The translations under genes and the position numbers were made by a program. The notes below the pieces were generated by a model. It saw nothing but the letters and a program-made list of their open reading frames with translations, did no database searches and was not told where the DNA came from. Shown in pieces: positions 9,651 through 54,289 of a stretch of DNA of 64,000 nt. The DNA is from Hemiscyllium ocellatum (taxonomy: Eukaryota). The first letter of the stretch is position 1, and the number at the start of each line of letters is the position of its first letter. The stretch lies in assembly GCF_020745735.1 (NCBI RefSeq), contig NC_083426.1, positions 12,710,001-12,774,000 of the forward strand, given 5' to 3'.

Positions 9651-9707
9651 GAAACAAGAGCTGAGAGACTGACATCAAGAACTGAACTGATCCTTGTGAA
9701 CAAAACG

Positions 9708-9744
9708 ATGTGGACTTTGATTCTCCTCATTTGTTCCATTCCCG
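9708..9744 (+). CDS. Unit B exon 1, signal peptide MWTLILLICSIP
   Basis: ATG, hydrophobic run, G|GTGAGT donor; paralog at 30249-30285. Confidence 0.85.
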
Positions 9745-29870: not shown

Positions 29871-30248
29871 CACACTCCCAGTTACTCAATCACAATTCAC
29901 TTCTCCCTGATTTTTTTTCTGTCAGTTGAGTTTTTGTTTCTGCTTGAAATACTGAGCTTGAATCAACATTATCCTCAACACTTGATGTTTTAACTTTCTT
30001 GATTTCAGATCATTCTATTCTTTCATTGGAAATTAAATCAGTTTTTCTGTTAAACACAACTAATCAAAATAAATGTCTTCACAGTGAACTTTCACCATCT
30101 GGCTGACTGTAGTTTCACAAACTGGCTTCGTATATCCTGTTCCTCATTTAACTTCTTGTAGACATTGCATCACACACTTATTTCAATGTGAGAAACAAGA
30201 GCTGTGGGACTGACATCAAGAACTGAACTGACCTTTGAGAATAAAACC

Positions 30249-30285
30249 ATGTGGATATTGATTCTCCTCATTTGTTCCATTCCCG
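30249..30285 (+). CDS. Unit C signal-peptide exon MWILILLICSIP
   Basis: ATG...G|GTGAGT; paralog of 9708-9744. Confidence 0.85.
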
Positions 30286-33200
30286 GTGAGTGACCATCTG
30301 AGTTGTATATTCAGATAATCAATGTTTGTTGAAGTCCACTGTGTGGTTTATACAGAAGAAATGTTTAAATATTTGAAGGTACATATTCAGATAAAGTGAG
30401 AGCTTGTGACACAATGGTTACATTGTTCTTGCTGTGATAAATGCTGAGAGTTTGATTCTCACTCCAGCACATTTTGCAAAAGCATGTGTGTTCTCACAAA
30501 GTCGAACAGGTTCATTACCAACCTGTAAATCCATCTAACATGCCCAGTGCAGGGAGCAGGACTGGGTGAGGTTCCAGGTCAGCCTTACACAATGCAGAGT
30601 GACACCCCTCACATTACAGCGACTGGCTTCAGGCAAGTGACAAGCTATAGAAAACAGACACAGCATGGACTTTGTCTACACCATGTGTCTCTAAATGTGG
30701 AAGTATTGGAAGTTTAAAGGAACAAATATAAAAATACCTGAACAACATCACAAACATATCTTCTACTGAACATATTGCAATCCCATGTGACAGAGTTCCC
30801 AAATACTTGAGAACAGCTTTATTAATTCTGAATTAAATCAAAATGGACCAAATAATGTTTCTTTTGAGTGAATAAAGCAGCACAATTATTTTAATTTTTC
30901 CAATGTTTTTAATGTTGAATATACACTGACAACTGGAGTTGTAATAAGCCCTCTAGGGAAACATTTTGAGTTGATTAAATATTGTTTTGTGAGGCTTAGT
31001 TGTAAAAGTAGATGGTTGGTTTATATTTCTCTTCACAGAAAAAGCCTTTTATCTTTCAGTCATGAACGTGAATCAAGTCGCTGACTCTCTTTCAATCCCA
31101 CTGCTTTACACATTACAATGTAACACTAAAACTATTGCTCATCATTGCAATCTCTCCATTTATGAGCAAGGAATTGTCAAACACTCAAGATTAAAATTCC
31201 CAATGTGGCATTACTCTAGGCTACAACTCGGTGAATTCTGTTACATGAAAACTTCCTGAAACATTTTGTGGCTCTCGCCCACCAAATTCATGTAGAATAC
31301 TTCACGGGCAGAAACCTGAAGCATGAATCTCTCTGTTTTCACAACTCTCTTTCATTCAAGACTTCCTGTTCCCAATGAGGTCTCTTTCTCCTGACTTTCA
31401 TCAGCTTTACATATTCATGAACTGAATGCCTTTCTCTTCTCCTCTCCACCTTAGATTTCAATTCCATTCTGTCATTTTACTCAAGAATTGTTCTCCACAA
31501 AAAGGGTGGTTCTCCCAACAAGATTGTTGGTCTGGTATTTATTGAAGTAAAGTCTCCCCAGTCATCAACAGGCTGTTCCTCTTCCACACCAGGAAACAAC
31601 ATTGCAGCAATTTAAGCACTGTCTCATGAAACATCTCTCTGGTACAGTCAGTAAATTATTTAGGTTATTTTACACTCCTTACACTGACAACAATGTGTGA
31701 TTACAAACCATCCTGCCTTTACTGCCCTCAAGGTCCTACACATTGATCTCTCTCTCTCCCATCATGAACTATCCCTTGCCGAACTCCAATTCTCTTCCTC
31801 TCCCACTTGAGGACTGTCATTATCTTGCCTGGGTCACCTGTTGTATCTACACGTTGAGCCCTGAAAATGCAGCCCCTGAGCCCACCATGAGTCTACACAC
31901 ACCCCTCTCCTCCCTCGATTAATCCCTTGCTCTCCGGTCAGAGGAAGGATCCATCAGCACCTGTGCCCTTCATCACACTGATTCCCAGCCGACTCCAACC
32001 CAATCCCCTCACTCAGGCTGCTCTCCGGGGCATGAGGCAACATTTCAATGATGTCACACATGGTGGAGTTAGAGCCCACAGCGGGCAGCACAAGCCCAAT
32101 TTCAAGATTGTCGCAAAGCTCGACCGGTGGGGAAAGAAAATATCACGACTGTTTCAATAATACATAGAGTCATAGAGATGTACAGCATGGAAACAGACCC
32201 TTCGGTCCAACCCGTCCACACTGACCAGATATCCCAACCAAATCTAGTCCAACCTGCCAACGCCTAGCCCATATCCCTCCAAAGCCTTCCCAATCATATA
32301 CCCATCCAAATATCTCTTCAATGTTACAATTGTACCAGCCTCCACCGCATCCTGGTAGCTAATTCCATACACATACCACCCTCTGCGTGAAAATGTTGCC
32401 CCTTAGGTTTCTTTTATATCTTTCCCCTCTAAGCCTAAAACTATGCCCTCTAGTTTTGGACACCCTGACCCCAGGGAAAAGACTTTGTCTATTTATCCTA
32501 TCCATGCTCCTCAGAATTTTGTAAACCTCTATAAGGTCACCCCTCAGTCTCCGACGCTCAAGGGAAAACAGCCCCAGCCTGTTCAGCCTCTCCCTGTAGC
32601 TCAGATCCTCAACCCTGGCAACATCCTTGTAAATCTTTTCTGAACCCTTTCAAGTTTCACAACATCTTTCCAATAGGAAGGAGACCAGAATTGTATGCAA
32701 TATTCCAACAGTGACCTAACCAATGTCCTGTACAGCCGCAACATGACCTCCCAACTCCTGTACTCAATACTCTGACCAATAAAGGAAAGCATACCAAACG
32801 CCTTCTTCGCTATCCTATCTAGCTGCAACTCCACTTTCAAGGAGCTATGAACCTGCACTCCAAGGTCTCTTTGTTCTGCAACACTCCCTAGGACCTTACC
32901 GTTAAGTTTACAAGTCCTGCTCAGATTTGCTTTCCCAAAATGCAGCACCTCACATTTATCTGAATTAAACTCCATCTGCCACTTCTCAGCTCATTGGCCC
33001 ATCTGGTCCAGATCCTGTTGTAATCTGAGGTAACCCTCTTCGCTGTCCACTTCACCTCCAATTTTGGTGTCATCTGCAAACTTACCAACTGTACCTCTTG
33101 TGCTTGTATCCAAATTATTTATGTAAATGACAAAAAGTAGAGGGCCCAGCACTGATCCTTGTGGCACTCCACTGGTCATAGGCTTCCAGTCTGAAAAGCA

Positions 33201-36200
33201 ACCCTCCACCAACACCCTCTGTCTTCTACCTTTGAGCCAGTTCTGTATCCAAATGGCTAGTTCTCCCTGTATTCCATGAGATCTAACCTTGCTAATCAGT
33301 CTCCCATGGGGAATCTTGTCGAACGTTCTACTGAAGTCAATATAGATCACATCTACTGCTCTGCGCTCATCAATCTTCTTTGTTATTTCTTCAAAAAACT
33401 CAATCAAGTATGTGAGACATGATTTCCCATGCACAAAAGCCATGTTGACTATCCCGAATCAATCCTGGCCTTTTCACATACATATACATCCTGTCCGTCA
33501 GGATTCCCTCTAACAACTTGCCCACCACCGAAATCAAGCACACTGGTCTATAGTTCCCTGGCTTGTCTTTACCACCCTTCTTAAACAGTGGCACCACCTT
33601 TGCCAACCTCTAGCCTTCCGGCACCTCACCTGTGACTATCGATGATACAAATATCTCAGCAAGAGGCCCAGCAATCTCTTTTCTAGCTTCCTACAGAATT
33701 CTCGGGGACATCTGATTAGATCCTGGGGATTTATCCACCTTTAACCTTTTCAAGACATCCGGCAATTCCTCCTCTGTAATCCGGACATTTTACAAGATGT
33801 CACCATCTGTTTCCCAGCAGTCTATATCTTCCATATCTTTTTCCACAGTAAATACTGATGCAAAATATTCATTTAGTATCTCCCCCATTTTCTGCAGCTC
33901 CACACAAAGGCCGCCTTGCTGATCTTTGTGGGGTCCTATTCTCTCCCTAGTTATCATTTTGTCCTTAATATACTTGTAAAACCCCTTTGGATTCTCCTTA
34001 ATTCTATTTGCCAAAGCTATCTCATGTCCCCGTTTTGCCCTCCTGATTTCCCTCTTTAGTATACTCCTACTTTCTTTTTACTCTTCTAAGGATTCACTCG
34101 ATCTATCCTGTCCATACCTGACATATGCTTCCTTCTTTTTCTTAACCAAACCCTCAATTTCTTTAGTCATCTAGAATTCCCTTTCATCCTGAAAATGTGT
34201 TGCTGGTTAAAGCGCAGCAGGTCAGGCAACATCCAAGGAACAGGGAATTCGATGTTTCGGGCACAAGCCCTTCTTCAGGAATGAGGAAAGTGTGTCCAGC
34301 AGGCTAAGATAAAAGGTAGGGAGGAGGGACTTGGGGGAGGGGCGATGGAGATGTGATAGGTGGAAGGAGGTCAAGGTGAGGGTGATAGGCCGGAGTGGGG
34401 TGGGGACAGAGAGGTCAGGAAGAAGATTGCAGGTTAGGAGGGCGGTGCTGAGTTCAAGGGAATTGACTGAGACAAGGTGGGGGGAGGGGAAATAAGGAAA
34501 CTGGAGAAATTTGAGTTCATCCCTTGTGGTTGGAAGGTTCCCAGGCGGAAGATGAGGCACTCTTACTCCAACCGTCGTGTTGTTATGTTCTGGCGATGGA
34601 GGAGTCCAAGGACCTGCATGTCCTTGGTGGAGTGGGAGGGGCAGTTAAAATGTTGAGCCACCGGGTGGTTGGGTTGGTTGGTCCGGGCGTCCCAGAGGTG
34701 TTCCTTGAAGCGTTCCGCAAGTAGGCGGCTCGTCTCCCCAATATAGAGGAGGCCACATCAGGTGCAGCGGATGCAATAGATGATGTGTGTGGAGGTGCAG
34801 GTGAATTTGTGGCGGATATGGAAGGATCCCTTGGGGCCTTGGAGAGAGGTAAGGGAGGAGGTGTGGGCGCAAGTTTTGTATTTCCTGCGGTTGTAGGGGA
34901 AGGTGCCGGGAGTGGAGGTTGTGTTGGTGGGGGGTGTGGACCTGACGAGGGAGTCACGGAGGGAGTGGTCTTTTCGGAACGCTGATAGGGGAGGGGAAGG
35001 AAATATATCCCTGGTGGTGCGGTCCGTTTGGAGGTGGCGGAAATGACGGCGGATGATACGCTGTATATGGAGGTTGGTGGGGTGGTAGGTGAGAACCAGT
35101 GGGGTTCTGTCCTGGTGGCGGTTGGAGGGGCGGGGCTCAAGGGCGGAGGAGCGGGAAGTGGAGGAGATGCGGTGGAGGGCATCGTCGATCACGTCTGGGG
35201 GGAATCTGCGGTCTTAGAAGAAGGAGGCCATCTGGGCTGTATGGTATTGGAACTGGTCCTCCTGGGAGCAGATGCGACGGAGACGAAGGAATTGGGAATA
35301 TGGGATGGCGTTTCTACAGGGGGCAGGGTGGGAGGAGGTGTAGTCCAGGTAGCTGTGGGAGTCAGTCGGTTTATAGTAGATGTCTGTGTTGATTCAGTCG
35401 CCCGAGATAGAAATGGAAAGGTCTAGGAAGGGGAGGGAGGAGTCTGAGATGGTCCAGGTGAATTTGAGGTCAGGGTGGAAGGTGTTGGTAAAGTGGATGA
35501 ACTGTTCAACCTCCTCGTGGGAGCACGAGGCAGCGCCGATACAGTCATCGATGTAGCGGAGGAAAAGGTGGGGGGTGGTGCCAGTGTAGTTGCGGAAGAT
35601 GGACTGTTCCACATATCCTATGAAGAGACAGGCATAGCTGGCGCCCATGCGGGTGCCCATGGCAATTTCTTTAGTTTGAAGGAAGTGGGAGGATTGGAAA
35701 GAGAAATTGTTCAGGGTGAAGACCAGTTCAGTCAGTCGAAGGAGGGTGTCGGTGGAAGGGTACTGGTTGGTACGGCAGGAAAGGAAGAAGCGGAGGGCTT
35801 TGAGTCCTTCGTGATGGAGGATGGAGGTGTACAGGGATTGGATGTCCATCGTGAAGATAAGGCGATGGGGACCGGGGAAGCGAAAATCATGGAGGAGGTG
35901 GAGGGCGTGGGTGGTGTCCCGAACGTAGGTGGGGAGTTCTTAGACTAAGAGGGACAGAACCGTGTCGAGGTATTGGGAGATGAGTTCGGTGGGGCAGGAG
36001 CAGGCTGTGACAATGGGTCGGCCAGGGCATTCAGGTTTGTGGATTTTGGGCAGGAGGTAGAAACGGGCGGTGCGGGGTTGTGGGACTATGAGGTTGGAGG
36101 CGGTGGATGGGAGATCCCCTGAGGTGATGAGGTTATGGATGGTCTGGGCGATGATGGTTTGGTGGTGGGAGGTGGGGTCCTGGTCAAGGGGGCAGTAAGA

Positions 36201-39200
36201 GGAGGCGTCCGCGAGCTGGCGTTTGGCCTCAGCGGTATAAAGGTCGGTACGCCAAACTACTACCGTGCCTCCCTTGTCTGCCGGTTTGATGGTGAGGTTG
36301 GGGTTAGAGTGGAGGGAGTGTCACCCTGACAGGAATATACTTTCTCTGGATTCTTGTTATCTCTTTTCTGAAAGCTTACAATTTTCCAGTTGTCTCATTA
36401 CCTGCGAACATCTGCCTCCAATCAGCGTTTGAAAGTTCTTGCCTAATACTGTCAAAATTGGCCTTTCTCCAATTTAGAACTTCAACTTTTGGATGTGGTC
36501 CATCATTTTCCATCACTATTTTCAAACGAATAGAATTATGGTCGCTGGTCCCAAAGTGCTCCCCCACTGACACCTCAGTCACCTTCCCTGCCTTATTTCC
36601 CAAGAGTAGGCCAGGTTTTGCAACTTCTCTCGTAGGTACACCCACATACTGAATCAGAAAATTGTCTTGTACACACTTAAGAAATTCCTCTCCATCTAAA
36701 TCTTTAACACTATGGCAGTGCCAGTCGATATTTGAAAAGTTTAAATCACCTACCATAACTACCCTATTATTCTTACAGATAGCTGAGATCTCCAGACAAG
36801 TTTGTTTCTCAATTTCCCTCTGACTACTGCGAGGTCTATAATATAATCCCAATAAAATGATCATCCCTTTCTTATTTCCCAGTTCCACCCAAATAACTTC
36901 CCTGGATGTATTTCCGGGAATATCCTTCCTTAGCACAGCTGTAATGCTATCCCTAATCAAAAATGCCACTAGCCCTCCTCTCTTGCCTACCTTTCTATCC
37001 TTCCTGTAGCATTTGTATCCTGGAACATTTAGCTGCCAGTCCTGCCCATCCCTCAGCCATGTTTCCGTAATTGCTATGATATCCCAGTCCCATGTTTCTA
37101 ACCATGCCCTGAGTTCATCTGCCTTCCCTGTTAGGGCCCTTGCATTGAAACAAATGCAGTTTCATTTATTAGTCATACCTTGTCCCTGCCTGCCCTGATT
37201 GTTTGACTCACTTCTGTTCTCAGCTGTACCCGTCTCAGATCGATCTCTTCCACCCCCACCCCCACCCCACCTTGCTAGTTTAAATTCTTTCAAGCAGTTC
37301 TAGCAAATTTCCCTGCCAGTATATTCGTCCCCTTCCAATTCAGGTGCAATCCTTCCTTCTTGTACAGGTCACTTCTACCCCAAAAGAGATTCCAATGATC
37401 AAAAACTGTGAATGCTTCTCCCATACACCAGCTCCTAAGCCATGCATTCATCTGCTCTATCCTCCTGTTCCAGCCCTCACTAGTTTGTAGCACTGGGAGT
37501 AATCCACTTATTACTACTGTTGAGGACCTCCTTTGTAAATTTCGGCCTAACTCTCTGTAATCTCCCTTCAGAATCTCAACCTTTTCCCTTCCAATGCCGT
37601 TGGTTCCAAAGTGGACAATGACCTCCTGCTGGCCCCTCTCCCCCATGAGAACATTCTGTACCCTCTCTGAGACATCCTCGATCCTGACATCAGGGAAACA
37701 ACACACCATTCTGATTTTTCTCTGCTGGCCACAGAAATGTCTGTCTGTACCTCTCACTACAGAATCCCCTAACACAATTGACCTCTTGGAAGCCAACGAA
37801 CCCCTCGTTGCATTAGAGCCAGTCTCAGTACCAGAAACTTGGTTGTTTGTGCTACATTCCCCTGAGAATCCATCACCCCCTACATTTTCCAAAACAGCAT
37901 ACCTGTTTGAAATGGGTATATCCACAAAAGAATCCTGCTCGAGCTGCCCACCTCTCTTACTCTTCCATCTATGTGACTGTATCTGAGACTTTCCCCCCTT
38001 TCTATAACTGCCATCCATCACATATTGTTGCTGTTGCAAATTCCTCATCGCTTCTATTTGTCTCTCCAACCGATCCACTCGATCTGATAAGATTCGCATC
38101 CAACATCATTTATGGCAGATATAATCCGCAGTAACCCTTAAACTCTCTTTAAACTCCCACATCTGACAAGAAGTACTTTTCACAGAAAGGCCATTTTTGC
38201 TCCTTCACAATCTACAGACCCAGAAAATAACACCGTCTTATTCCTCGACAAACACTGTCGCAGGTTAAATTAATAGCTATGGTTTATATTTTAAGTTTAA
38301 TCAAGAAACTTATCTCCAAAAACATCTAATCAAGAAAGAATCCACTGTACCCACTACTGCAGCCTTTCGCTTGGACAGGCTTAAAACAACAATTACCTTC
38401 TCTGATTGTGTGCTGTGAACTTCATCCAACAGTTCCTCCAAGATTCGGTGTGAATTTCACTGTTTGTTAATTTTCCCAGATGCACTGCGACGTCCAGCGA
38501 TACACGAATTCAAACAGCAAAGGCAGTAACTGTGCAGGTTTTCTCTCTCTCTCTCTCCTGCACTGTCCTCACCATGTGCTTCCTTTGTCTGCTCTTCTCC
38601 CTTTTCAACTGCTGTTGTTTTGACTCTTTTTTCCAAAGTTCCAAAACAATGCAACAGCAGATAAACAATAATTGCTGCTTCTGGAATTCGAGGAAATCAC
38701 CTCCAACACCTAAAATACCTCAAAAAAAGGAGCAGCTCTTACAGCCAGAAATGTTTCCCATCCTGGGAATTTGGAACATCCTGAGGCTGTAACAAAGGAT
38801 TGCCTTCATCATGAACTCGATGGAATGTAGCTAATTAAAATGTTAATGTTTATATTAAGCAATTCAATCCAGTCAAACTTATCAATTCGTATCTCCTCAG
38901 TTTCAGGTGCTTTATGGGCAGAGAAAGATGTAACGGGAATTTTGGGAAGAGCGATCACAATATCTTGTCACTACGAAGCACGGTGGTACCAGTCACACAT
39001 AAAATATTGGTGTCACAGATGGACTACTCTGTGTAACGTTATAGCAAAAACAAGTTGGCGAAATGGGCGAATATCAATCACTGACAACAAAATACAAGGA
39101 ATATTTCTTGTCACAATCAAGAATCTTGAATGGTGGGATGCCGGACGATACAGCTGTGGGATTGAGATTCCTGGTATTTACTCTGACCTCATGTTTAATG

Positions 39201-42200
39201 TAAATCTGCACATCTCTGAAGGTAAATGTCTCATTGATCTTTTAAAAAGATACTCTCTGCTGATATATCTTATCAATGTTTTATCCAGGAAGAAAAGTGA
39301 CAAAGAGTTGGGGGATATTTGATTTTTTGATCTCTCAATAATTGTTTCTTTCCAACAGAAGCCATCTCGGTTCCTGGACTTCGATTTTTATCCCAACCAA
39401 ATGTCTCATGGTCTGGGGTTTCAGTGACCTGTGAGTCTGCCCAGGGATCCCTCCCCATTCACTACGCATGGTCTGAGAAGATGCCATCACAAGATTCAAT
39501 GATCTCTGACACCAATAAACTGGATCTACATTGTCAATCCTTCACACAGCAACATCATCAATACTACTGCACAGCCTCAAATACTCAGGGAACAAAACCC
39601 AGTGAAATTGTCCATGTGTCAGTCAACAATGTAAGAGAGAAGAACTGCAGTTATAGGATACAGATCAACAGCATCGGTAAGTGTGATGTAAACAATGTTT
39701 GTTTATTATCTCACTCTGGGAAACTGTAATTGATAAAATGCACTCCATTTGTTTCTTCGTCATTTCTGAACAAATCCAATGGTTTGTACTGTAGTTAGAA
39801 AATGTGGAGGTCCAAAAAATACTAACCACATCATGTAGAAACATTGGAACAACTCCAATAATCCCCGCAAAATTAAAACAGCATTTGATTGATGGAGAAT
39901 TTGCATTTTTCTAACAAATGGAATTTTAAATTCAGTCCATGACTGTTGTGTCCAGATTTAGGGCCTATATTGGGGATAGAGTGGAGATCAGTTGTACAAT
40001 GAAATACCTGTAAATATTGCCTGCAGCTATTTCCTGATCTGATCTGTTTGAGCTGTCAGAGAAGTAGCAAGTCAGCATCAAGTCGAAGTGACACACGGGA
40101 ACTGTATTTGGAACTATCAGCAGCAGCTCATGTGGCTGCACTCTCACTTTTGATGCCAGCACGTTGGGGGTTCCAGTTCCCCTTCGGGGTTAAAATTCAG
40201 CTGGATCCCAGTGCCCAGCAGAGAGAAGTAATGCTGTGCTGTGGCAGGTGAGACAGTGTCGATGAGGTGAGAAACTGAGAACCTGTTCCCCCTTTAGGAA
40301 TGGCACCATTTGTAAACTATTTACAGAATAGAGGTTCTCCTAGTGTCTGAGCAAGCATTCATAGAGTCATAGAGTCATAGAGATGTACAGCATGGAAACA
40401 GACCCTTTGATTCAACGCGTCCATACCGACCAGATATCCCAATCCAATCTAGTTCCACCTGTCAGCACCAGGCCCATATCCCTCCAAACCCTTCCTATTC
40501 ATATACCCATCCAGATGCCTTTTAAATGTTGCAATTGTACCAGCCTCCACTACTTCCTCTGGCTGCACATTTATTCCATGCACCACCCTCTGTGTGCAAA
40601 AGTTACCCCTTAGGTCTCTTTTATATCTTTCCCCTCTCACCCTAAACCTATGCTCTCCAGTTCTGGACTCCCCCACCCCAGGGAAAACTCTTTGTCTGTT
40701 TATCCTATCCAAACCCTCATAATGTTGTAAACCTCTATAAGGTCACCCCTCAGTCTATGACGCTCCAGGGAAAATAATCCCAGCCTGTTCAGCCTCTCTC
40801 TATAGCTCAAATCCTCCAACCCTGACAACATCCTTGTAAATCTTTTCTGAACCTTTTCAAGTTTCACAACATCATTCCAATAGAACGACAACCAAAATTG
40901 CAGACAATATTCCTGCAGAAGCTTAACCAACACTCTGTACAGCTGCACCATGACCTCCCAACACCTGTACTCAATACTCTGACCAAGAAAAGGAAACATC
41001 AAATGCCTTCTTCTCTATCCAATCTACCTGCAACTCCACTTGCAAGGAGCTATGAATCTGCACTCCAAGGTCTCTTTGTTCAGCAACACTCTCGACGACC
41101 TCACCAGTCCTACTAAGATTTGCTTTCCAAAAATGCAGCATCTCGCATTCATCTGAATTAAATTCCATATGCCACTTCTCAGCCCATTGGCCCATCTGAT
41201 CAAGATCCTGTTGTAATCTGAGATAACCTTCTTCACTATCCACTTCACCTCCAATTTTGGTGTCATCTGAAAACTTACTAACTATACATTTTATGCTTGT
41301 ATCCAAATCATTTATGTAAATGACAAAAAGTAGACACCCCAGCACCGATCCTTGTGGCACTCCACTGGTCACAGGCCTCCAGTCTGAAAAACAATCCTCC
41401 ACAACCACCCTCTGTCTTCTACCTTTGAGCCAGTTCTGTATCCAAATGGCTAGTTCTCTCTGTATTCCATGAGATCTAACCTTGCTAATCAATCTCCCAT
41501 GGGGAAACTTGTCAAACACTTTACTGAAGTCCATGTAGATCACATCTACCATTCTGCCCTCATCAATCCTCTTTGTTACTTTTTTCAAAAATCTCAATCA
41601 AGTTTGTGAGACATGATTTCCCACGCACAAAGCCATGTTGATTATCCCTAATCAGTCCTTGCCTTTCCAAATACTTGCATATCCTCTCCCTCAGGATTCT
41701 CTCCAACAACTTGCCCACCACTGACATCAGGCTCACTGGTTATAGATCCCTGGCTTGTCCTTACTAACCTTCTTAAACAGTGGCACCATGTGAGCCAACC
41801 TCCAGTCTCCTGGCACCTCACCTGTGACTATTGATGATCCAAAGATCTCAGCAAGAGACCCAGCAATCACTTCTCTAGCTTCCCACAGAGTTCTAGGGTA
41901 CACCTGATCAGGTCCTGGAGATTTATTTGCCTTTATGCATTTCAAGACATCCTGCACTTCCTCCTCTGTAATGTGGACATTTTGCAAGGTGTCACCATTT
42001 ACTTCGCTACTTTCTATATCTTCCATAACCTTTTCCACTGTAAATACTGATACAAAATACTCGTTTAGTATCTCCCCCATTTTCTGCAGCTCCACACAAA
42101 GCCCGCCGAGCTGAGCTTTGAGGGGCCCTATTCACTCCCGAGTTATCCTTTTGTCCTTAATGTATTGTAAAAGCTCTTTGGATTCCACTTAACTCTATTT

Positions 42201-45200
42201 GCCAAAGCTATTTCATTTCCCGTTTTTACCCTTCTGATTTCCCTCTTAAGTATTCTCCTACTGCCTTTATACTCTTCTAGGATTCACTCAATCTGTCTTG
42301 TCTATTCCTTACATATGCTTCCTTCTTTTTCTTAAGCAACCCCACAATTTCTTTAGTCATCGAGCATTCCCTATACCTACCAGCCGTTCCTTTCACCCTA
42401 ACAGGAATGTACTTTCTCTGGATTCTCGTTATCTCATTTCTGAAGGCTTCCCATTTTCCAGCCGTCCCTTTACTTGCGAACATCTGTCCCTAATCAGCTT
42501 CCGAAAGTTCTTGCCTAATACTGTCAAAATTGGACATTCTCCAATTTAGTACTTCAACTTTTAGATCTGGTCTATCCTTTTCCATCACTCTTAAATCTGG
42601 AATTATGGTCGCTGGCCCCAAAGTGCTCCCCCACTGACACTTCAGTCACCTGCCCTGCCTTATTTCACAAGAGTAGTCAGGTTTTGCACATTCTCTGATA
42701 GGTACATCCACATACTGAATCATAAAATTGTCTTGTCCGCACTTAACAAATTCCTCTCCATCTAAACCCTTAACACTATGGCAGTCCCTGTCTATGTTTG
42801 GAAAGTTAAAGTCCCCTACCATAACCACCCTCTTATTCTTACAGAAAGCTGAGATCTCCTGACAAGTTTGTTTCTCAATTTCCCTCTGACTGTTCAGGGG
42901 TCAATAATACAATCCAAATAAGGTTATCATCCCTTACTTATTTCTCAGTTTCCCCAAGATAACTTCCCTGGATGTATTTCCAGGAATATCCTCCCTCAGC
43001 ACAGCTGTAAGGCTATCCCTTATCAAAAATGCCACTCTCCCTCCTCTCTTGCCTCCCTTTCTATCCTTCCTGTAGCATTTGTATCCTGGAACATTAAGCT
43101 GCCAGTTCTGCCCATCCCTGAGCCATGTCCCTGTATTTGCTGTGATATGCCAGTCCCATGTTCCCAACCATGCCCTGAGTTCATCTGCCTTCCCTGTTAG
43201 GCTCCTTGCATTGAAATAAATGCAGTTTAATTTAACAGTCCTACCTTGTTCTCTGCTTTGTCCCTGTCCGCCCTGACTGTTTGAATCACTTCTGTTCTCA
43301 ACTGTACCAGTCTCAGATTAATCTCCTTCCTCACTATCTCCCTGGGTTCCTCCCCAAACCCCCCACACACCCCCCCCAACGTTACTAGTTTAAGCCCTCC
43401 TGCCCAGCTCTAGCAAATTTCCCTGCCAGTATATTAGTCTGCTTCCAATTCAGGAACAATCCGTCCCTCTTGTCCAGGTCATTTCTACCACAGAAGAGAT
43501 TCCAATGATCCAAATGTGTGAATCCTTCACCCATACACCAGCTCCTCAGCCATGCATTCATCTGCTCTATCCTATTCTTGCCCTCACTAGCTCGTAGCAC
43601 TGGGAATAATCCAGATATTACTACTCTCGAGGACCTCCATTTTAAATTCCTGCAAAACTCTCTGTAATCTCCCTTCTGAATCTTAACCATTTCCCTTCCT
43701 ATGTTGTTTTTTTCCAACATGGACAATGACCTCATGCTGATCCCTCTCCTCTGTGAGAACATTCTGCACACCCTCTGAGACATCCTTGATCCTGGCGCCA
43801 GGGAAGCAACACATCATTCTGCTTTCTCGCTGATGGCCACAGAAACGTCTGTCTGTACCTCAGACTAGAGAGTCCCCTAACACAAGCGATCTCTTGGAAT
43901 TCGACATACCCCTCATTGCATCAGAGCCAATCTCAATACCAGAAACTTGGCTGTTCTTGCTACATTCACCTGAGAATCCATCATCCCCTGCATTTCCCAA
44001 AACAGCATACTTGTTTGAAATAGGGATAGTCACAGAAAACCCTGCATTACCTGCCTACCTCTCTTACCTTTCCTGGACATAACCCATCTATGTGACTGTA
44101 TCTGCAACTTTTCCCCCTTCCTATAACTGCCATCCATCACACCACCTTGCTCTTGTAAATTCTTCATTGCCCTTAACTGTCTCTCCAACCGATACATTTG
44201 ATCTGAAAGGATTTGCAAACAACAGCATTTATTGCAGATATAATTCTCAGTAACATGTCAACTCTCTCAGAACGATCACATCTAACAGGAAGGGCATATC
44301 ACTCTTCACCAGGCCATTTTTGCTTTTTCCAATTTGCAGACCCAGAAAATAGGACTGTCTTATTCCTCTCCTGCTCCAGGCTAACTTAATGCTTATATTT
44401 TTAAGTTTAATCAAGAGACATATTTCAATAAAACATGTAATCAAAAAAGAATCCACTCTACTCACTACTGCAGACTTTCTGTCAGGCCACACTTACAAAT
44501 ATTCACTTATCTGTTTCTGTGCTGTGACCTTTCCCAAACAGGTTCCTCCAAGATTAGTTGTCAATTTCCCTGTCTGTTAATTTTCTCAGACGCACTACGA
44601 TGTCCAGTGATACATCAATTCAAACAACAAAGGCAGTAACTGCACAGGTTCACTCCTGTGTCAGTTAGCAGTGTGGGTTTCCTTTTCTGTCTCCCTGTCC
44701 TGCACTGACCTAACCATGCGTTGCCTTTGTCTGTTCCTCCCCCTTTTAAAAGTGCTGCTAATTTGACATTTTTTGCCCAAAGTTCCAAAACAATGCAGCA
44801 GCACTTAAACAGTATTTGCTGCTCCTGGAATTCGAGGAGATCACCTTCAACACCTGAAATACCTCAAAAAAGGAGCAGCCTGTTACGGCCAGAAATTTTT
44901 CCCATCCTCCATCTTGGATTACCCAGAATCCTCTTTTTGCTGCCTTCCAACTGTTTTCTTTCTTCAAATGAGTACTTCACAGAATGGGAAGTATTTTGGG
45001 ATCTCCTCAGATTCTCGAAAGCACCAAGACCCTTCTGATTTATCAACGTCCTTTAGGCAATGATATCTGCCACCATTTCCAAGTCTGCTCCACATCAGAC
45101 TCCAGTAATGTACTTTGTCCTTAACTGCCCACTTCAAATGGCTTAGAAAACCACTCAGTCAGGGGCAATTGGAATGGACAACAAAAGCTGTCCATTAAAG

Positions 45201-48041
45201 ACTAAAAAATAAAGAGTTCATAGTTTATTTGTTGCAGAAATGATTCACCTAAAAAAAAACCCCAACCCATGTTGACTGTGTATTCCCTGGAGATGGGGAA
45301 CCTCATCTGTCTGTCTCATGGATTCTCACACTTCAGGAGATGGAAAACCACTGGCGGATTGTGTCGGTGTGAGGATGAGGTTTCACATTATTCCTGCAGG
45401 CTCAGAAAACAGACCTCACGAGGATGGAAGTCACCACTGTCTATGTCGGCAAGTGACAGCTCCATGTGAAACCCATGGTTTTAAACAAGTGGGATATCTG
45501 GGTTGTAGTTACCAGCCCAAACCCTTTAACAAACCCCAATGTGACACACCAACTCTCAGATTCAGGGAAAAAAGTAATCGGGATTGTCATTGTGGGGAAC
45601 TACAGGAGATGGGAGAGATACTGAACAAATATTTCGCAGGAGTTTCTACAATAGAAAATAACATAGAGGTGAGGGAGCTTCAGGAAATAAACATTGATGT
45701 CATAAGACACAGTCCATATTATACAAGAGGAAGTTTTGGAGGTTTTAAAAAACATAAAAGTTAATAACTCACTGGGACCTGATCAAATGTATCCGAGGAT
45801 GGTGTGGGAAGTTGGGGAAGGAATTTGGGGCATCTCTAGCAGAGATATTTGCAACATCCACAGCCATGGGTGAGGTGCTGAAGGACTGGAGGGTGGTTAA
45901 TGTTGTGCCTTTATATAAGAAAGACTGTAAGGAGAAGCTTGGGAACTCTCGAGCTGTCATTCCGATATCTGTGCTGGGTTGGTTGTTGCAGTGGATTCTG
46001 AGAGAGAGGATTTACATACATTTGGAGAGTCAAGAGCTGATTTGGGATAGAGTGAGGGAAATCGTGCTGTCCAAACCTGACTGAGATATTTAATGAAGTA
46101 ACCAAAACAACTGATGACAACACAGCAGTACACATTGTCTACACAGGCATTAATGACAGGGTTCCGCAGGGTAGACTAATCAGGAAAGTTAGATCACATG
46201 GGGTTCAGGGTGAGCTTGCCAATCAGATACAAATTTGGTTTGGGACAGGAGACAGAGGGTGGTCATGAAGGGCATTTTTTGGACTGATGGCATGTGACGA
46301 GTGGTGTTTCACAGGGATCATTGTAATTTGTATAAGCAATTTGGAGAGGAATTTAGGATGCATAGTTAATGAGTTTGTGAATGACACCAAATTTGGTGGT
46401 ATAGTCAACAGTGAAGAAGATTATCTAAGATTACAAAGGCATTTTGATCAACTGGGTCTTTGGGCTGCTCGGTGGCAGATGGAGTTTAATTTGGATAAAT
46501 GTGAGGTATTACATTTCGGTAAAACAAACAAGGAGAGGACTTATACAATTAATGGTCAGGCCCTGGGTTGTTCTGGTGAACAGAGGGACCTTGGGGCTCA
46601 GGTGAAGCAGGTATTTAACACGTTTGTCTGCGTTGCTCAGATCATTGAGTATCGGAGTTGGAACATCTTATTGTGGTGTATAGGATGTTGCTGAGGCCAC
46701 TCTTGGAGCACTGTGTACAATTCTGATCACTGCAACAGGAAGGTTATTATTCAACTGGAGAGGTTTCGATCTTCTCCTGAACATATTATAGGCCCATGTG
46801 ACAGAGTTCCCAAATACTGAAGAGCAAAATATTATTAATTATGAATGAAATGCAAAAGACCAAATAATGTTTCTTTTAAGTGAACATACCAGTATAATAA
46901 TTTTAATTTTTCCAAAGTTTTTAATGTTGAACACACTCTGGAAACAGGGGTGGTAATAACTCCTCAAACAAAACATTTTGCGTTTGCTTTTATTTCTTTT
47001 CTGCTTTGGAGTGCTGTTCATTAAATATTGTTTTGTGAGATTCAGTCACAAAAGTAGGTGGTTGGGTTATATTTCTCTTCCCACTAAAAGCCTTTTCCAT
47101 TCAGTCTTTAACTTGAATGAAGTTGTTTACTCTCTTTCAATCTCATTGAATTACACATTACAGTGTAATACTACAATAACATTTTTGTTCATCATTGCCA
47201 TCCCTCCACTTATAGTCAAGAAATTTTCAAACACTCAAAATTAAAATGCCCAATGTAGCATTACTCTAGACTATGACTTAGTCAATTCTGTTACAAGAAA
47301 CCTTCCGGGAACATTTTGTGGCTGGAGCCCATGAATTTCATGCAGAATAATTCACGGACAGAAACCTGAAGTGTGCATCTCTCTGTTTTCACAATTCTCC
47401 TTTTTCCAAAGCTTCCTTTTTCCAATAAGATCACTGCTTTCTGACCTTCATCACCTTTAATCATTCATGTATCTATCTCCCTTTCTTCTCTCCCCACCAC
47501 CTCTTCACTTACACTTAATATCCTTTCTGTCACTTTATTAAAGAATCGTACCCCACACAAAAGGCAATTCTCTTCACAAAATTGTTGGTCTGGTATTTAT
47601 TGAACTAAAGTCTAGCCAGACATCGACAGGCTGCTCCTCTTTCACACCAGAACCTAATGGCACAGCAATTTATACATTTTCCCATGAAGCATCTCTCTGG
47701 AAAGGTCAGTAACTTACTTTGAGGAGAAAGTGAGGACTGTGGATGCTGGAGATCAGAGTCGAGAGTGTGGTGCTGGGAAAACACAGCAGGTCAGTCAACA
47801 TCTGGAGAGCAGGTGGTGATTTTACCCTCCTTACATTCTCAGCAATATGTGATTACAAATAATCCTGCCCTTGTTGCCATTAAGGTCCTGCACATTGATC
47901 TCTCTCCCACATTGTGAAACATCCCTGGCAGAAGCTGAATTCTCTTTCTTTCCTACACAAGGACTCACATCATCGTACTGGGTCACCCGCTGTGTCTGCT
48001 CGTTGAGCCCTGAAAATGCAACCCCTGAGCCCACCATGAGT

Positions 48042-48077
<36 letters not shown>

Positions 48078-48202
48078 CTCCTCCCTGGATGAAACCCTCA
48101 TTCTCAGGTCGGAGTAAGGACCCTTCAGCTCCTGTACCCTCCTTCACACTGATCCCCAGCTGACTCCAATCCAGGCCTGTCACTCAGGCTGCTCTCCACG
48201 GT

Positions 48203-48233
<31 letters not shown>

Positions 48234-50902
48234 GGAGGAAGGGGAATGGCGGGGGGGTGCAATATTTCGATGAAGTCACACACGGTGGAGTTAGAGCCCA
48301 CAGCGGGCAGCACAAACTCAATTTCAAGGTTGTCCCAAAGCTCGACCAGTGGGGTAAGAAAATATCCCGACTGTTTCAATCATTCCCTGGGAATTTAGAA
48401 CAGCCTGAGACTGTGATAATGGTTTATATGAATAATTACCTTCATCATGTAATGGGTGGAGTGCAGCTGATTAAAATGTATCTGTGTTTATTTAGTCATT
48501 CTTTCCAGTTCAATTTCTGAAATATTATCTCTTCAGTTTCAGATGTTTTAATGGCAGCGAAACACGTTACTGGAATTTTGGGAAGAGCGATCACAATATC
48601 TTGTTACTATGAAAATTGGCGGTACCAATCAAATGTGAAATATTGGTGTCATGGAAGGAATCGTTCATGTAACATTATAGCAAAAACAGATTGGCCAAAT
48701 GGGAGAATATCAATCACTGAGAACAAAACACAAGGAATATTTCTTGTTGCAATGAAGAATCTTCAATGGGAAGATGCCGGATGGTACAGCTGTGGGATTC
48801 AGATTCCTGGTATTTACTCTGACCTCATGTTTAATGTAAATCTGCACATCTCTCAAGGTAAATATCTCAGTGATTTTTACATAACTCTTTGCTGATATGT
48901 CTGATCAATATTTTAACCAGGAAGAAGATTGGCCAGGTTTTGGAGTATATTTGATTTTTTGATCTCTCAATAATTGTTTCTTTCCCACAGAAGCCGTCTC
49001 TGTTCCTGGGCTTCGATTTTTATCCCTACCAAAAATCTCATGTTCTGGTGGTTCAGTGACAGTCTCCTGTGAATCTGCCCAGGGATCTCTCCCCATTCAC
49101 TACACATGGTCTGAGAAGATGCCATCTCAAGATTCAATGATTTCTGACACCAATAAACTGGATCTACATTGTCAATCCTTCACACAGCAACATCATCAAT
49201 ATTACTGCACAGCCTCAAATACTCAGGGAACAAAACCCAGTGAAATTGTTCATGTGTCAGTCAACAATGTAAGAGAGAAGAACTGCAGTTATAGGATACA
49301 GATCAACAGCATCGGTAAGTGTGATGCAAACACTGTTTGTTTATTATCTCACTCTGGGAAACTGTAATTAATAAAATGTACTCCATTTGTTTCATTGTCA
49401 GTTCTGAATAAAGCCAATGGTTAGCACTGTACTTGGAAAATGAGCAGGTATATAAAATCCTGCCCACAGCGTGGAGAAACATTGCAATAACTCCATTGCT
49501 GCATTACAGCCATTTGCTTCCTTCAACTAAGTATTTCACAAATTGGGGAGATGCTAAACAAATATTTTGAATATTTTACTGTGGAGAGACACATGGAGAT
49601 TAGGAAACTCAGGGAAAATTGATGTCTTGAAAATAGTCCAAATTACAGAAGGAGACGTGCTGATCATCTTAAAATACATAACAATGGATAAATCTCCAGG
49701 ACCTAATCAAGTGTCCCCAAGAGAGAAATGAATTCAGCAAAACCCATTTTTCGCAGAAGTCCTGAGGTCCCATTGGTGAGGAGAGCTCTCTTGGTTGTCT
49801 GTAAGTGAGACTCAGATGAAGCTGAATATTTTCTCATGTCTCAATAGGAAGGGAATATATTTGTGACAATTCCTCAACAATATCACCAACAACATCACCA
49901 AAAATATCACGAGGGGCAACAAGAACATCGTCAGGACCCAAGTCTGTCAGTAAAAGGTAGAACAATTTCATTGTCAATATTTCCATCAGCATTAATTCCA
50001 AGTGAGAATAAGGGACTGAGCATAAAGGCTTACAATACATTTCAATTTTATCAGAATGTAAACTTTATACAATGTTATTATGTTTGCTTCCTTACTGGTG
50101 AGCTGAAGGCAAGCTTTTCTGGGTGTTTTAATTTTAGTTTTAATTAACAAAAGAGTTCAATTTCCAAGTCATAACATTTCCAATGTTGCTATTTACATTT
50201 TTGGACATTCATAACAGGAAATGCCAATTCTCTGTCTGCCAAGTCCCAGGTTAAATGCTTCGTTATTCATCTAAGCTCACGGTGTTGTATATTTCAAAGA
50301 AGTGACAGATTTTGTTGAGCCAGGGTGTCTGGAGTATCACTGCCAGGGACATTACATTCTCTCACATCTTCTCCTCCATTCTCTCATGTTAAACATTATT
50401 CCCAAACTGAGAGGGTGGGAGGCTGTCTGGTTCCAGCTGGTTAAGCCTTGCCTGTTAGAAGGTGTAGGAGCAGTGTGGGATGAAGATATTCTGAGTTCCT
50501 CACTGACTGAAGAGACTTCTCACCCACTGGAATATTACACCAGACTGCAGTGCTCCTGTAAATATCCATCCACATCTAATAATCCTCATTGACAACAAGA
50601 TGCTGAGCATGACAGGACGTGGAACTGAAACTTGTTACATTTGGCCTTTATATATTGTTCAAGTCAATCAAAAATTAAACTGTAAATTAATTTCAGCTGT
50701 GCTGCTTTATTTTGCTACAATATACTGCAGTGTGAACAGGGGATAAATGTTTAAAACATCAAGCAGTCTTGTTTCCTTCAAATGATTTTGTATTTCTTCT
50801 GTTTTACACAGTTACGTTGCCTGGGATGTGATACGCTGGGTACTCTTCACTCTCCTGGTGATTTGTTCTGTTTCTGTCACAATGTTTACACAAAAACATT
50901 AG
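30249..50902 (+). CDS. Predicted C/D fusion receptor SP-V-C2-V-C2-stalk-TM, 506 aa; exons 30249-30285, 38901-39221, 39359-39676, 48537-48857, 48991-49314, 49848-49956, 50812-50902
   Basis: All exons open with GT-AG boundaries; 1521 nt joined. No TM exon lies between 39676 and 48537, and no signal exon precedes 48537. Junction at about 46768. Confidence 0.7.
34190..36320 (-). mobile_element. Penelope-like element (RT plus GIY-YIG), 5'-truncated, nested in CR1
   Basis: RT: DIQSLYTSI...AMGTRMGASYACLF...RYIDD; GIY-YIG: FTCTSTHIIYCIRC..CGLLYIGET..L.ERF.EH; 3' end carries a hammerhead core. Confidence 0.92.
34247..34282 (-). ncRNA. Minimal type I hammerhead ribozyme motif, one core-adjacent mutation
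   Basis: ATTC-CTGAAGA-A-GGGC-TTGT-GCCC-GAAAC-ATC-GAAT; helix I 4 bp, helix II 4 bp; the GTC site is changed to ATC. Confidence 0.7.
38901..39221 (+). CDS. Unit C V-domain exon (alternative acceptor at 38907)
   Basis: VSGALWAEKDVTGILGRAITISCHYEARWYQSHIKYWCHRW...DAGRYSCG; G|GTAAAT donor. Confidence 0.9.
39359..39676 (+). CDS. Unit C C2 exon (Cys to Trp at 39409; in-frame 6-nt deletion)
   Basis: 318 nt, open, intact splice sites. Confidence 0.85.
40358..44930 (-). mobile_element. CR1 LINE retaining 5'UTR and ORF1, with internal deletions
   Basis: (CATAGAGT)n tail at about 40359-40382; RT 40971-41597; ORF1 esterase remnants 43385-44218; absent from units A and B at this site. Confidence 0.9.
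48043..48074. repeat. (CA)16 microsatellite
   Basis: Direct reading; only 3-4 units at the paralogous sites near 11597 and 31895. Confidence 0.95.
48203..48232 (+). repeat. Poly-G (30 G) followed by a G-rich tract
   Basis: Direct reading; paralogs have only G4-G5. Confidence 0.9.
48537..48857 (+). CDS. Unit D V-domain exon (alternative acceptor at 48543)
   Basis: VSDVLMAAKHVTGILGRAITISCYYENWRYQSNVKYWCHGRNRSC...DAGWYSCG; G|GTAAAT donor. Confidence 0.9.
48991..49314 (+). CDS. Unit D C2 exon
   Basis: 324 nt open; 9 nt differences from the unit B exon by hand count. Confidence 0.9.
49848..49956 (+). CDS. Unit D stalk exon (GREYICDNSSTISPTTSPKISRGATRTSSGPKSVSK)
   Basis: 109 nt, phase 1 to 2; 8 codons longer than the unit B stalk. 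Confidence 0.8.
50812..50902 (+). CDS. Unit D TM exon: (S)YVAWDVIRWVLFTLLVICSVSVTMFTQKH*
   Basis: As in units A and B. Confidence 0.85.
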
Positions 50903-53594
50903 GTGAGCATCATGGCCTTTACAAGAATGATTTTGAGCACTCTAAGTTCCCCATCAATGAGGTGGCTCTGGGTGGAGGGGTTTCAAAGCAGGAGACACAG
51001 TTTGAGAAGAATGGGTTGATCATTTGGGACTGAGATGAGCAGGAATTTCTTCACTCAGAGGGTGATGGTTTGTTGGAATTCTCTGCCCCAGAGAGCTCTG
51101 GAGGCTCCAGCCTTGAGTATATTCAAAACAGAGATTAATAATGTTCTGGGTAATAAAGATATGGAGGGACATGACAGAAGTGCAAGTAAAATGGTATTCA
51201 GTTGGAAGATCTGCCCTGATCCAGGTGAATGCTGAGGGACCCTCGAGAGGCTGAATGGCCTACTCTGGTCCTGCCTCATCTCTCTCCATGGTGGCCTCAT
51301 GCTGTCATTGTGCCAGCCTCCACCATTTCGTCTGGCAAATCGTTTCATACACATGCCCATCCTCTGCACGAAAAATTTACTCCTCAGGTCCTTTTGAAAT
51401 CTTTTCCCTCTCACCTTCAACCTATGCCCTCTAGTTCTGGATACCCCCATTGAGGAAAAAGACCTCCCTGTCCATGCCCTTGTTTAAATCTCATTGAATA
51501 ATATAACCATGTGTCCTAATTTGGAATGAAGACAATGTAAATGCTGTTGGGTAGAGAGACAAGTGAGTTAGTGTGTAATAGTTCCATTGGATGGAACTTC
51601 AATATCTGTTAAAATAATAAAATACATTTGTTGCTATTCAAACAAATTGATTTATTCAGCATTTATTGGTATGTACAGATCCCACGCATACATTAATAAA
51701 TATGTAAACAAAGAAACCAGAGTCTGATCTAAAGAGGAAATACAGCATCAAATCCCCTTTTCTGGGGCGGTCAGAGAACAAAGGAGATGCCAGAGAGCAA
51801 AAGGAAATGGTATATTCCCAGGTCACTGTCATATTGTTCCTCACATAGAGTCATAGAGTCACAGAGATCTACAGCATGGAAACAGACGCTTCGGTCTAAC
51901 TTAGACAAGCCAACCAGATATCCAAACCCAATCTAGTCCCACCTGCCAGAACCTGGCCCATATCCCTTCAAACCCTTCCTATTCATATAACCATCCAGAT
52001 CCCTTTTAAATGTTGTAATTGTACTCGCCTCCACCACTTCCTCTGGCAGCACATGCCAAACGTGCATCACCCTCTGCATGAAAAAGTTGCCTCTTAGTCC
52101 TCTTTTATATCATTCCCCTCTCACCCTAAACCTATACCCTCTAGTTCTGGACTCCCCCACCCAGGACAGTGTCTATTTATCCTATCCATGCCCCTCATCA
52201 TTTTATAAACCTCTATGAGTTCACCCCTCAGTCTCCGACGCTCCAGGGAAAACAGCCCTAGCCTATTCAATCTCTCCCCATAGCTCAAATCCTCCAACCC
52301 AGACAACATCCTTGTAAATCTTTTCTGAATCCTATCCAGTTTCACAACATCTTTCCGATAGGAAGGAGACCAGAATTACATACAATATTCCAATAGTGGG
52401 ATAACCAATGTCCAGGACAGGTATAACATCACCTCCCAACTCCTGTACTCAATGCCCTGACCAATAAAGGAAGCATGCCAAACACCTTCTTCACTATCTT
52501 ATCTACCTGCGACTCCACTTTCAAGGAGCTATGAACCTGCACTCCAAGGTCTCTTTGTTCAGCAACCCTTCCTAGGCCCTTACCATAAAGCGTATAAGTC
52601 CTGCTAAGATTTGCTTTCCCAAAAAGGGGCACCTCACGTTTATTTAGATTAAACTCCATCTGCCACTTCTCAGCCCATTGGCCCATCTGATCAAGATCCT
52701 GGTCTCATCTGAGGTAAGCCTCTTCGCTGTCCACTACACCTCCAATTTTGGTGTCATCAGCAAACTTACTAACTATACCTATTAGGCTCACATCCAAATC
52801 ATTGAGATGAAAAGGATTTGATCCAGCTCCAATCCTTGTGGCACTCTACTGGTCATAGATCTCCAGTCTGAAAAACAACACTCGACCACCATCCTCTGTC
52901 TTTGACCTTTAACCTATTTCTGCATTCAAATGGCTAGTTCTCCCTGTATTCCATGAGATCTAACCTTGCTAATCAGTATCCCATGGGGGACCTTGTCGAA
53001 TGCCTTACTGAAGTCCATATAGATCACATTTACCTCTCTGCCCTCAGCAAACTTCTTTGTTACTTCCACAAAAATCTCAATCAAGTTTGTGAGATATGAT
53101 TTCATACGCACAAAGCCATGTTGATGATCCCTGATCAGTCCTTGCCTTTCCAAATACATGTACATCCTGTCCCTCAGGGTTCCCTCCAACAACTTACCCA
53201 CCACCGACATCAGGCTTCCTGGTCAATAGTTCCCTGGCTTGTCCTTACCATCTTTCTTAAATTGTGGCACCACGTTAGCCAACCTCCAGATAAAAATATC
53301 TCAGTAAAAGGCCCAGCAATCACTTACCTGGCTTCCCACAGAGTTCTAAGGAATAAATGATCAGGTCCTGGGGATTTATTCACTTTTAGGCATTGACTTC
53401 CAGCACTTCCTTTTCTGTAATATGAACATTTTTCAAGATGTCACCATTTGTTTCCCTACATTGTACAGCTTCCATATCCTTTTGGACAGTAATTACAAAT
53501 GCAAAATATTATTTAGAATTCAAAGTTTGTGAAAAGATTTGTAGCTCGTGTGCTTGTTGTTGTGTTTCTGTTCGCCAAGCTGGGAATTTGTGTT

Positions 53595-53994: not shown

Positions 53995-54289
53995 GTGGAC
54001 CGGTGGCACAGTAGTTAGCACTGCTGCCTCACAGTGCTAGAGACCCAGGTTCAATTCCCACCTCAGGCAACTGACTGTGTGGAGTTTGCACATTCTCCCC
54101 GTGTCTACGTGGGTTTCTTCTGGGTGTTCCGATTTATTCCCACAGTCCAAAATGCGCAGGTCAGGTGAATTGGCCATGCTAAATTATCCGTAGTGTTAGG
54201 TGTAGGGGAATGGGTCTGGGTGGGTTGCGCGTCGGTGTGGACATGTTGGACCGAAAGGCCTGTTTCCACATTGTCAGTAATCTAATCTA
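53995..54289 (+). mobile_element. HE1-like SINE nested in CR1
   Basis: A and B boxes, TAATC tail. Confidence 0.9.

Follow-up and report, generated by a model that had tools for sequence, protein, structure and literature searches.

A probable four-domain activating receptor gene of the MDIR family in Hemiscyllium ocellatum, likely bearing the scar of an old intronic rearrangement

In PMC3031540, which cites Cannon et al. 2006, the MDIRs are presented as multigene families with both activating and inhibitory members, related to CD300, TREM, FCAR and pIgR; skate cDNAs had revealed MDIRs with four domains by 2006 (Cannon et al. 2006, cited in PMC3031540). In the clearnose skate, MDIR5 (UniProt A0S0F…, P0201, 501 amino acids (aa)) is built in the order leader, V, C2, V, C2, stalk, charged transmembrane (TM) segment and short tail. 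The DICPs of ray-finned fishes are likewise a tandem multigene family with activating and inhibitory members and with two- and four-domain forms (bioRxiv 10.1101/2021.06.11.448072), and their D1a-D2a-D1b-D2b arrangement has been speculated to originate from the loss of an upstream terminator and of a downstream signal peptide (bioRxiv 10.1101/2021.06.11.448072). Here we report on a 64,000-nt stretch of the genome of the shark Hemiscyllium ocellatum (contig NC_083426.1, positions 12,710,001 to 12,774,000 of the forward strand; hereafter the window) and, within it, on the interval 30249-50902. An initial annotation had read this interval as two neighbouring receptor genes recently welded together by a deletion. 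Our analysis indicates that it is probably one four-immunoglobulin(Ig)-domain activating gene of the MDIR family, which carries the scar of an old single rearrangement. The predicted exons and introns of this gene are as follows.

30249-30285, plus strand: leader exon, MWILILLICSIP, 37 nt, phase-1 donor GTGAGT (splice-site check, tblastn)
30286-38900, plus strand: intron 1, 8.6 kb, enlarged by an antisense long interspersed nuclear element (LINE); homologous up to 32158 to intron 1 of another receptor unit of the window, unit B
38901-39221, plus strand: V1 exon, 321 nt, V-set domain of pIgR/CD300 type (Pfam V-set 7e-09)
39359-39676, plus strand: C2a exon, 318 nt, with a Cys-to-Trp 'SWSG' mark and a 2-codon in-frame deletion (tblastn, domain alignment)
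39677-48536, plus strand: C2a-V2 intron, 8.86 kb, containing the rearrangement junction; no family exon (tblastn) and no credible alternative leader (scan)
48537-48857, plus strand: V2 exon, 321 nt, of a distinct V lineage (Pfam V-set 2.5e-11)
48991-49314, plus strand: C2b exon, 324 nt, FCRL-like Ig domain (PDB FCRL5 match 1.6e-26)
49848-49956, plus strand: stalk exon, 109 nt, Ser/Thr/Pro-rich with one Cys, of the same stalk type as the tail of the Chiloscyllium punctatum model P0283
50812-50902, plus strand: TM exon, 91 nt, …WDVIRWVLF…, with an Arg in the TM segment, tail TQKH and a TAG stop at the exon end (splicing and translation)

All seven exons have AG acceptors and GT donors and sum to 1521 nt, that is, 506 codons plus a stop in an open frame, and each of the four Ig exons (321, 318, 321 and 324 nt) lies between phase-1 introns. 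The stop-free 506-aa V-C2-V-C2 product with a charged TM segment, as initially proposed, was confirmed by these phase-compatible canonical splice sites, and the canonical Ig Cys and Trp residues are intact in the joined product. Both V exons contain a second AG 6 nt in, an in-frame alternative acceptor that is used by some Chiloscyllium models. V1 and V2 share 73.6% aa identity and C2a and C2b 91.6%, while C2b is 96% identical at the aa level to the C2 domain of unit B. The initial annotation had also held that the stalk and TM exons of the upstream part (unit C) and the signal exon of the downstream part (unit D) are missing, and tblastn with each exon peptide indeed revealed no leader, stalk or TM homologue within 39677-48536. 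We further scanned the 8.86-kb intron for phase-1 exons composed of an ATG, a hydrophobic stretch and a donor; nothing leader-like was found, the best donor matching at 6/9 positions versus 8/9 for the real leader. An unrecognised signal exon feeding 48537 independently, the objection raised at the outset, was thus detected in the intron neither by homology nor by the scan for hydrophobic open reading frames (ORFs) followed by a donor. Based on this genomic evidence, the reading as a four-domain activating receptor, with the two halves predicted to be spliced together in vivo, is probably right.

Both V exons exceed the Pfam cut-off for V-set domains, and their nearest relatives of solved structure are pIgR (PDB 6e-40) and CD300/CMRF35-like proteins (1.7e-12; figures for V2). 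When V2 was searched against the full library, 1962 proteins were recovered, many of them containing several V stretches, and searches with the neighbouring unit returned elasmobranch models named 'polymeric immunoglobulin receptor-like', 'CMRF35-like' and 'Fc receptor-like 5', together with skate MDIR3 (E 1.7e-163), MDIR5 (5e-142) and MDIR2 (1e-76). No DICP was present among the protein matches of the V2 and neighbouring-unit searches. By homology, the family is the cartilaginous-fish MDIR group, which combines pIgR/CD300-like V domains with FCRL-like C2 domains. MDIR5 is collinear with the 506-aa product over residues 1-504 at 48% identity, with the same V and C2 types and a TM segment reading 'WKVGRW' versus 'WDVIRW' in the shark product. 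Models of the family contain from 2 to >6 Ig domains, with directly abutting V-C2-V-C2 arrangements in Hemiscyllium, Chiloscyllium, Scyliorhinus, Carcharodon, Mustelus and skates. Given its presence in skate MDIR5 and in many elasmobranch models, the architecture is therefore not new, MDIR5 already having the V-C2-V-C2 form with a charged TM segment. The two genes nevertheless differ in that the V-C2 pairs of MDIR5 come from old separate lineages whereas both pairs of the shark gene come from one young subfamily, which argues that the four-domain forms arose independently. Older H. ocellatum paralogues of the same family and chromosome (P0202, P0038 and P0204) have V-C2-V-C2 or V-C2-C2 ectodomains; domains 1 and 3 of these models group in different deep clades, together with sequences of Stegostoma, Rhincodon, Carcharodon and Mustelus. 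Their architecture is much older.

The interval 30249-50902 belongs to a head-to-tail array of plus-strand Ig-receptor units with LINE copies between the units, as revealed by self-blastn of the window. Mapping of the window by tblastn with each exon peptide separately delineated four units.

Unit A, plus strand: the window begins in its post-C2 intron; decayed second C2 exon at 3286-3472 and 4191-4328; TM exon at 5847-5936
Unit B, plus strand: leader 9708, V 12338, C2 12784, decayed second C2 exon 16562-16841, stalk 17844, TM 18801
Unit C, plus strand: leader 30249, V 38903, C2 39361
Unit D, plus strand: V 48539, C2 48993, stalk 49850, TM 50813

Comparison of these units with each other locates the scar within the C2a-V2 intron, where three features adjoin.

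46056-46767, plus strand: old LINE reverse transcriptase (RT) fragment, common to A and B, ending at the junction (tblastn with an intact RT ORF, E 5e-41)
46767-46769, no strand: non-homologous junction, post-C2 intron / G / intron 1 (self-blastn and five-way alignment)
46769-48536, plus strand: 3' portion of an intron 1, without leader exon, equivalent to 10446-12337 of unit B (self-blastn)

On the left flank, self-blastn matched 2064-2756 to 46058-46767 (82.5%, E 1e-172), and on the right flank 10446-11371 to 46772-47719 (76%, E 4e-132) and 30970-31664 to 47016-47724 (79%). An alignment of the five stretches revealed a clean switch at 46767/46769 (...GGTTTC/G/ATCTTCT...) with a microhomology of at most 1 nt, the equivalents of the break lying at ~2756 in A, ~16010 in B, ~10446 in intron 1 of B and ~30768 in intron 1 of C. 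The homology switch initially reported near 46768, with equivalents at about 2750, 16010, 10445 and 30768, is thus correct to within a base or two. The degenerate RT fragment, here on the sense strand, occupies the same place in A, B and C; its homology extends to 2920 in A and to 16244 in B (160-230 bp further) and ends at 46767 in C. The junction is therefore derived, and later than the LINE insertion common to A, B and C. The final 650 bp of 46769-48536 are conserved in L001, a contig of an older C. punctatum assembly.

The age of the junction can be approached through C. punctatum, in which two proteins annotated as 'polymeric immunoglobulin receptor-like' are encoded by neighbouring genes 9.3 kb apart: XP_072419286.1 (P0283, 780 aa), which clusters with P0259, a V2-type fragment of this species, and XP_072419285.1 (P0287, 1073 aa), found in a neighbouring cluster. 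Residues 2-506 of the H. ocellatum product align with residues 266-780 of P0283 at 84% identity without rearrangement, from V1 through the TM segment and across the C2a/V2 join (RIQINSI/VSDVLM versus RIQANST/VSDVLW), so that the C-terminal 490 aa of this model, which also swallows a neighbouring gene, have the same domain order, the same stalk type and an identical TM segment. Residues 1-494 align with residues 1-497 of P0287 at 80% identity, with an identical leader, MWILILLICSIP. This N-terminal 497-aa part again has the same order and belongs to a model that swallows its neighbour, but the charged TM segment is replaced downstream by a conventional one followed by an immunoreceptor tyrosine-based inhibitory motif (ITIM) tail with the motifs LVYANL, ITYAVL and VIYSNL, which makes P0287 inhibitory. 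Among 49 orectolobiform C2 domains, the Cys-to-Trp change producing 'SWSG' occurs only in H. ocellatum C2a, in domain 4 of P0283 and in domain 2 of P0287.

Domain trees provide a similar picture. V2-type domains form a clade (support 99/98) that contains both genera and in which the domain always follows a C2 or belongs to a leaderless model, never standing first; V1-type domains of both genera join this clade (82/90). V1 and V2 have an FG loop two residues longer, without counterpart in the B type, and the nearest relatives of V1 are domain 1 of P0287, domain 3 of P0283 and the H. ocellatum model P0254. At the nucleotide level, L001 is 92% identical to unit D over a stretch of exons and introns that begins 290 bp before V2 and ends 390 bp beyond C2b, the unusually short post-C2 intron of D included. 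This contig spans V2-C2b and starts 586 bp upstream of V2, with the junction outside it; the breakpoint is read from the present H. ocellatum copy, and the collinearity with C. punctatum is at the protein level. A second contig of the older assembly, L002, which covers an inhibitory tail, did not enter the comparison. Because the same domain order, the 'SWSG' mark and the V2 clade are found in both genera, the rearrangement predates the separation of Hemiscyllium and Chiloscyllium. The suggestion that a change of domain number had been caught in the act is contradicted by the V1-C2a-V2-C2b order of one activating and one inhibitory C. punctatum gene. Clustering of the copies by species indicates that the four-domain gene afterwards either gave rise to activating and inhibitory copies or underwent homogenisation between the two forms.

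The NCBI annotation of the same assembly treats this interval differently, with a single model.

48551-50902, plus strand: LOC132828342, XP_060701346.1 (P0256), 276 aa, no leader; coding sequence (CDS) range spanning 2352 bp and covering unit D from an internal Met

No other CDS is annotated by NCBI within 10 kb of LOC132828342, and the NCBI protein set of H. ocellatum includes no protein that joins C to D and none that contains V1 or C2a. Our 506-aa model is probably the better hypothesis on the genomic evidence, because a leaderless type-I receptor is implausible. Comparison of D with L001 gave exon divergences of 8.7% for V2 and 6.2% for C2b, with introns at 5-11%, and ratios of nonsynonymous to synonymous substitution (dN/dS) of 0.61 for V2, 0.43 for C2b and 0.54 for both combined. 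Such ratios correspond to weak purifying selection, the usual case for immune receptors that evolve fast; among paralogues of the window, dN/dS is ~0.2 for C2 and 0.6-0.8 for V domains. A 2-codon deletion, in frame and private to H. ocellatum, lies in C2a beside the B-strand cysteine and keeps the alternating B-strand pattern.

Several of these observations weigh against a working four-domain gene. The NCBI annotation leaves V1 and C2a outside any model and C unjoined to D; the 39676-to-48537 splice is predicted from genomic sequence; the C. punctatum proteins were modelled automatically and run adjacent genes together as well, such that their C2a-V2 join could be the predictor's choice; a dN/dS of 0.54 is weak evidence of constraint, the exons being no more conserved than the introns; and the C2a deletion is private to H. 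ocellatum. In an alternative reading, the rearrangement would be old but this copy would no longer be four-domain in H. ocellatum, with D used alone or silent and V1 and C2a being decaying remnants that stay open by chance or through gene conversion from neighbours. Such an interpretation agrees with the start of the NCBI model at an internal ATG in V2 and the lack of a CDS over V1 or C2a, with an exon divergence from L001 close to that of the introns, with the private deletion, and with the homogenisation of C2 exons across the array (2.8% between B and D versus at least 13% in introns). We nevertheless consider it unlikely. A leaderless type-I membrane protein makes no sense, and the NCBI model is more likely 5'-incomplete; the seven exons, their splice sites and all Ig Cys and Trp residues are intact, unlike the second-C2 pseudo-exons of A and B, in which stops and a frameshift show what an unconstrained exon looks like in this array; the C2a indel is in frame; and the terminal branches of V1 and V2 in the domain tree are not unusually long.

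A recent event fares considerably worse. According to the original proposal, a lineage-specific or polymorphic deletion would just have welded two complete two-domain neighbours, domain number being in the course of changing. The junction does have the form expected of such a deletion, the exons are still stop-free, and the joined gene has not been modelled by NCBI. However, two C. punctatum genes share the V1-C2a-V2-C2b order, the 'SWSG' mark and the leader, the V2 lineage occurs in both genera and never comes first, the junction flanks are 18-24% diverged from their homologues, and divergence between the V2-C2b block and its C. punctatum counterpart has already reached 5-11%, all of which makes a recent origin highly improbable. 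Least credible of all is an assembly artefact in which two units were mis-joined or collapsed, as might be feared in a tandem array with many LINE copies, given that the two sides of the junction are mutually non-homologous and cannot have been created by collapse, that the nearest paralogous sequences are only 76-82% identical, and that proteins of identical domain order are predicted from the independently assembled genome of another genus, which removes the misassembly concern.

Returning to the reading as one old four-domain gene, the order would be leader, V1, C2a, V2, C2b, stalk, Arg-bearing TM segment and a 4-residue tail. Its charged TM segment suggests pairing with an adaptor carrying an immunoreceptor tyrosine-based activation motif (ITAM), through which the product would signal as the activating partner of an inhibitory four-domain paralogue. 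One non-homologous rearrangement would have linked a post-C2 intron with the central part of an intron 1 and thereby placed a second V-C2 pair behind the first. It would date from between the arrival of the old LINE fragment in the post-C2 intron and the split of Hemiscyllium from Chiloscyllium. Since then the four-domain gene would have retained its open frame and given rise, by duplication, to activating and inhibitory forms. More tentatively, and with slightly less than even confidence, we propose that the 46768 junction is the founding scar of a hemiscylliid lineage in which four-domain receptors occur as activating and inhibitory pairs.

Two kinds of event could have produced this scar. 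The observed junction would result if a deletion had run from one gene's post-C2 intron into intron 1 of its downstream neighbour, but equally if, within one gene, the segment from the middle of intron 1 to the post-C2 intron had been tandemly duplicated, in which case nothing would have been removed. The deletion initially invoked is the same mechanism as that speculated for the DICPs, which differ in belonging to another family and lineage and in that their mechanism was proposed from domain trees, whereas an intronic breakpoint is visible in the shark. We slightly favour duplication of a V-C2 cassette over deletion between tandem sister genes, because it takes one event instead of two, because V1 and V2 are sister lineages, and because none of the species in the domain tree set yielded a V2-type gene that has its own leader. 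Pointing to deletion instead, a stalk of the D type is found in P0254, a two-domain model of V1 type, although its 17-kb CDS span may conceal skipped exons. Pairwise distances were rejected as unreliable for this choice, the C2 exons being homogenised (B and D differ by 2.8% versus at least 13% in flanks and introns) and V2 lying on a long branch.

The long introns of the 30249-50902 gene are due to insertion of antisense CR1-like LINEs, of which two copies lie within it.

32163-38540, minus strand: near full-length CR1-like LINE with a GDSL-esterase ORF1, endonuclease and RT (Pfam Lipase_GDSL_2, Exo_endo_phos_2 and RVT_1 on minus-strand ORFs)
40368-44650, minus strand: LINE copy in the unit C post-C2 intron, antisense, matching 32163-38540 (RVT_1 on the minus-strand ORF 40971-41597)

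According to self-blastn, the family has five copies in the window with ~83-87% identity (19853-22381, 32163-38540, 40368-44650, 51844-53289 and 61812-62886), all on the minus strand and thus antisense to the receptor genes; the copy at 40368-44650 is not found at the corresponding site in A or B. A short interspersed repeat of ~310 bp also occurs in both orientations at 11898-12221, 21133-21440, 24168-24475 and 54001-54289 (84-95% identical), one copy being inside the LINE downstream of unit B. The window as a whole has no N and ~42% GC, and an Rfam scan of its full length found no family at gathering score.

The remaining observations concern the other units of the array. The unit B exons match the second half of XP_060700983.1 at 100% identity, and unit D agrees fully with XP_060701346.1; the two proteins are from H. 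ocellatum (assembly GCA_020745735.1). In A and B, the decayed second C2 exons, which carry stops and a frameshift, sit between the working C2 exon and the stalk, that of A being interrupted by an insertion; they are relics of a V-C2-C2 ancestor resembling the H. ocellatum model P0204 (V-C2-C2-stalk-TM). Unit D is without such a relic, its post-C2 intron having been reduced to only 535 bp. Directly upstream of the unit C leader, 24461-27078 and 27208-29871 form a 2.6-kb tandem duplication with 90% identity, and a related copy of the segment is present at 7920-9062, upstream of the unit B leader; this segment may carry a promoter or an exon of the 5' untranslated region. The NCBI models P0002, P0153 and P0154 chain adjacent genes (5909-6049 to 9660-9744; also 50875-51015): the TM exon is overrun in another frame (HNVYTKTLGEHHGLY…FEKNG) and spliced to an acceptor ~48 nt upstream of the next leader ATG, which reflects either read-through transcription within the array or an annotation artefact. 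At 23324-23398 there is a 92% aa match to an odd linker exon (SLSTPGQQQPIHIL…) that, in the NCBI model P0153 of a different locus, separates a TM exon from a V2-type exon. Its surroundings are repeat-like, with 3471-3764 matching 23361-23069 in inverted orientation, and the match may be an exonised repeat.

Our analysis provides the opportunity to correct a gene model, unit D being annotated at present as a leaderless 276-aa protein with V1 and C2a unannotated. It represents neither a new kind of receptor nor a new mechanism, since the C. punctatum models describe the same gene and the idea of fusion has been voiced for the DICPs. It does offer a concrete and datable example of how tandem arrays of Ig-type receptors change domain number via phase-1 exon cassettes, and its value lies in the combination of a readable breakpoint with paired activating and inhibitory descendants. 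If the junction is indeed the founding scar of this lineage, it would be expected in every four-domain copy of both genera, and it would constitute the first breakpoint-level evidence for the gain of a V-C2 pair in a modular immune receptor family.

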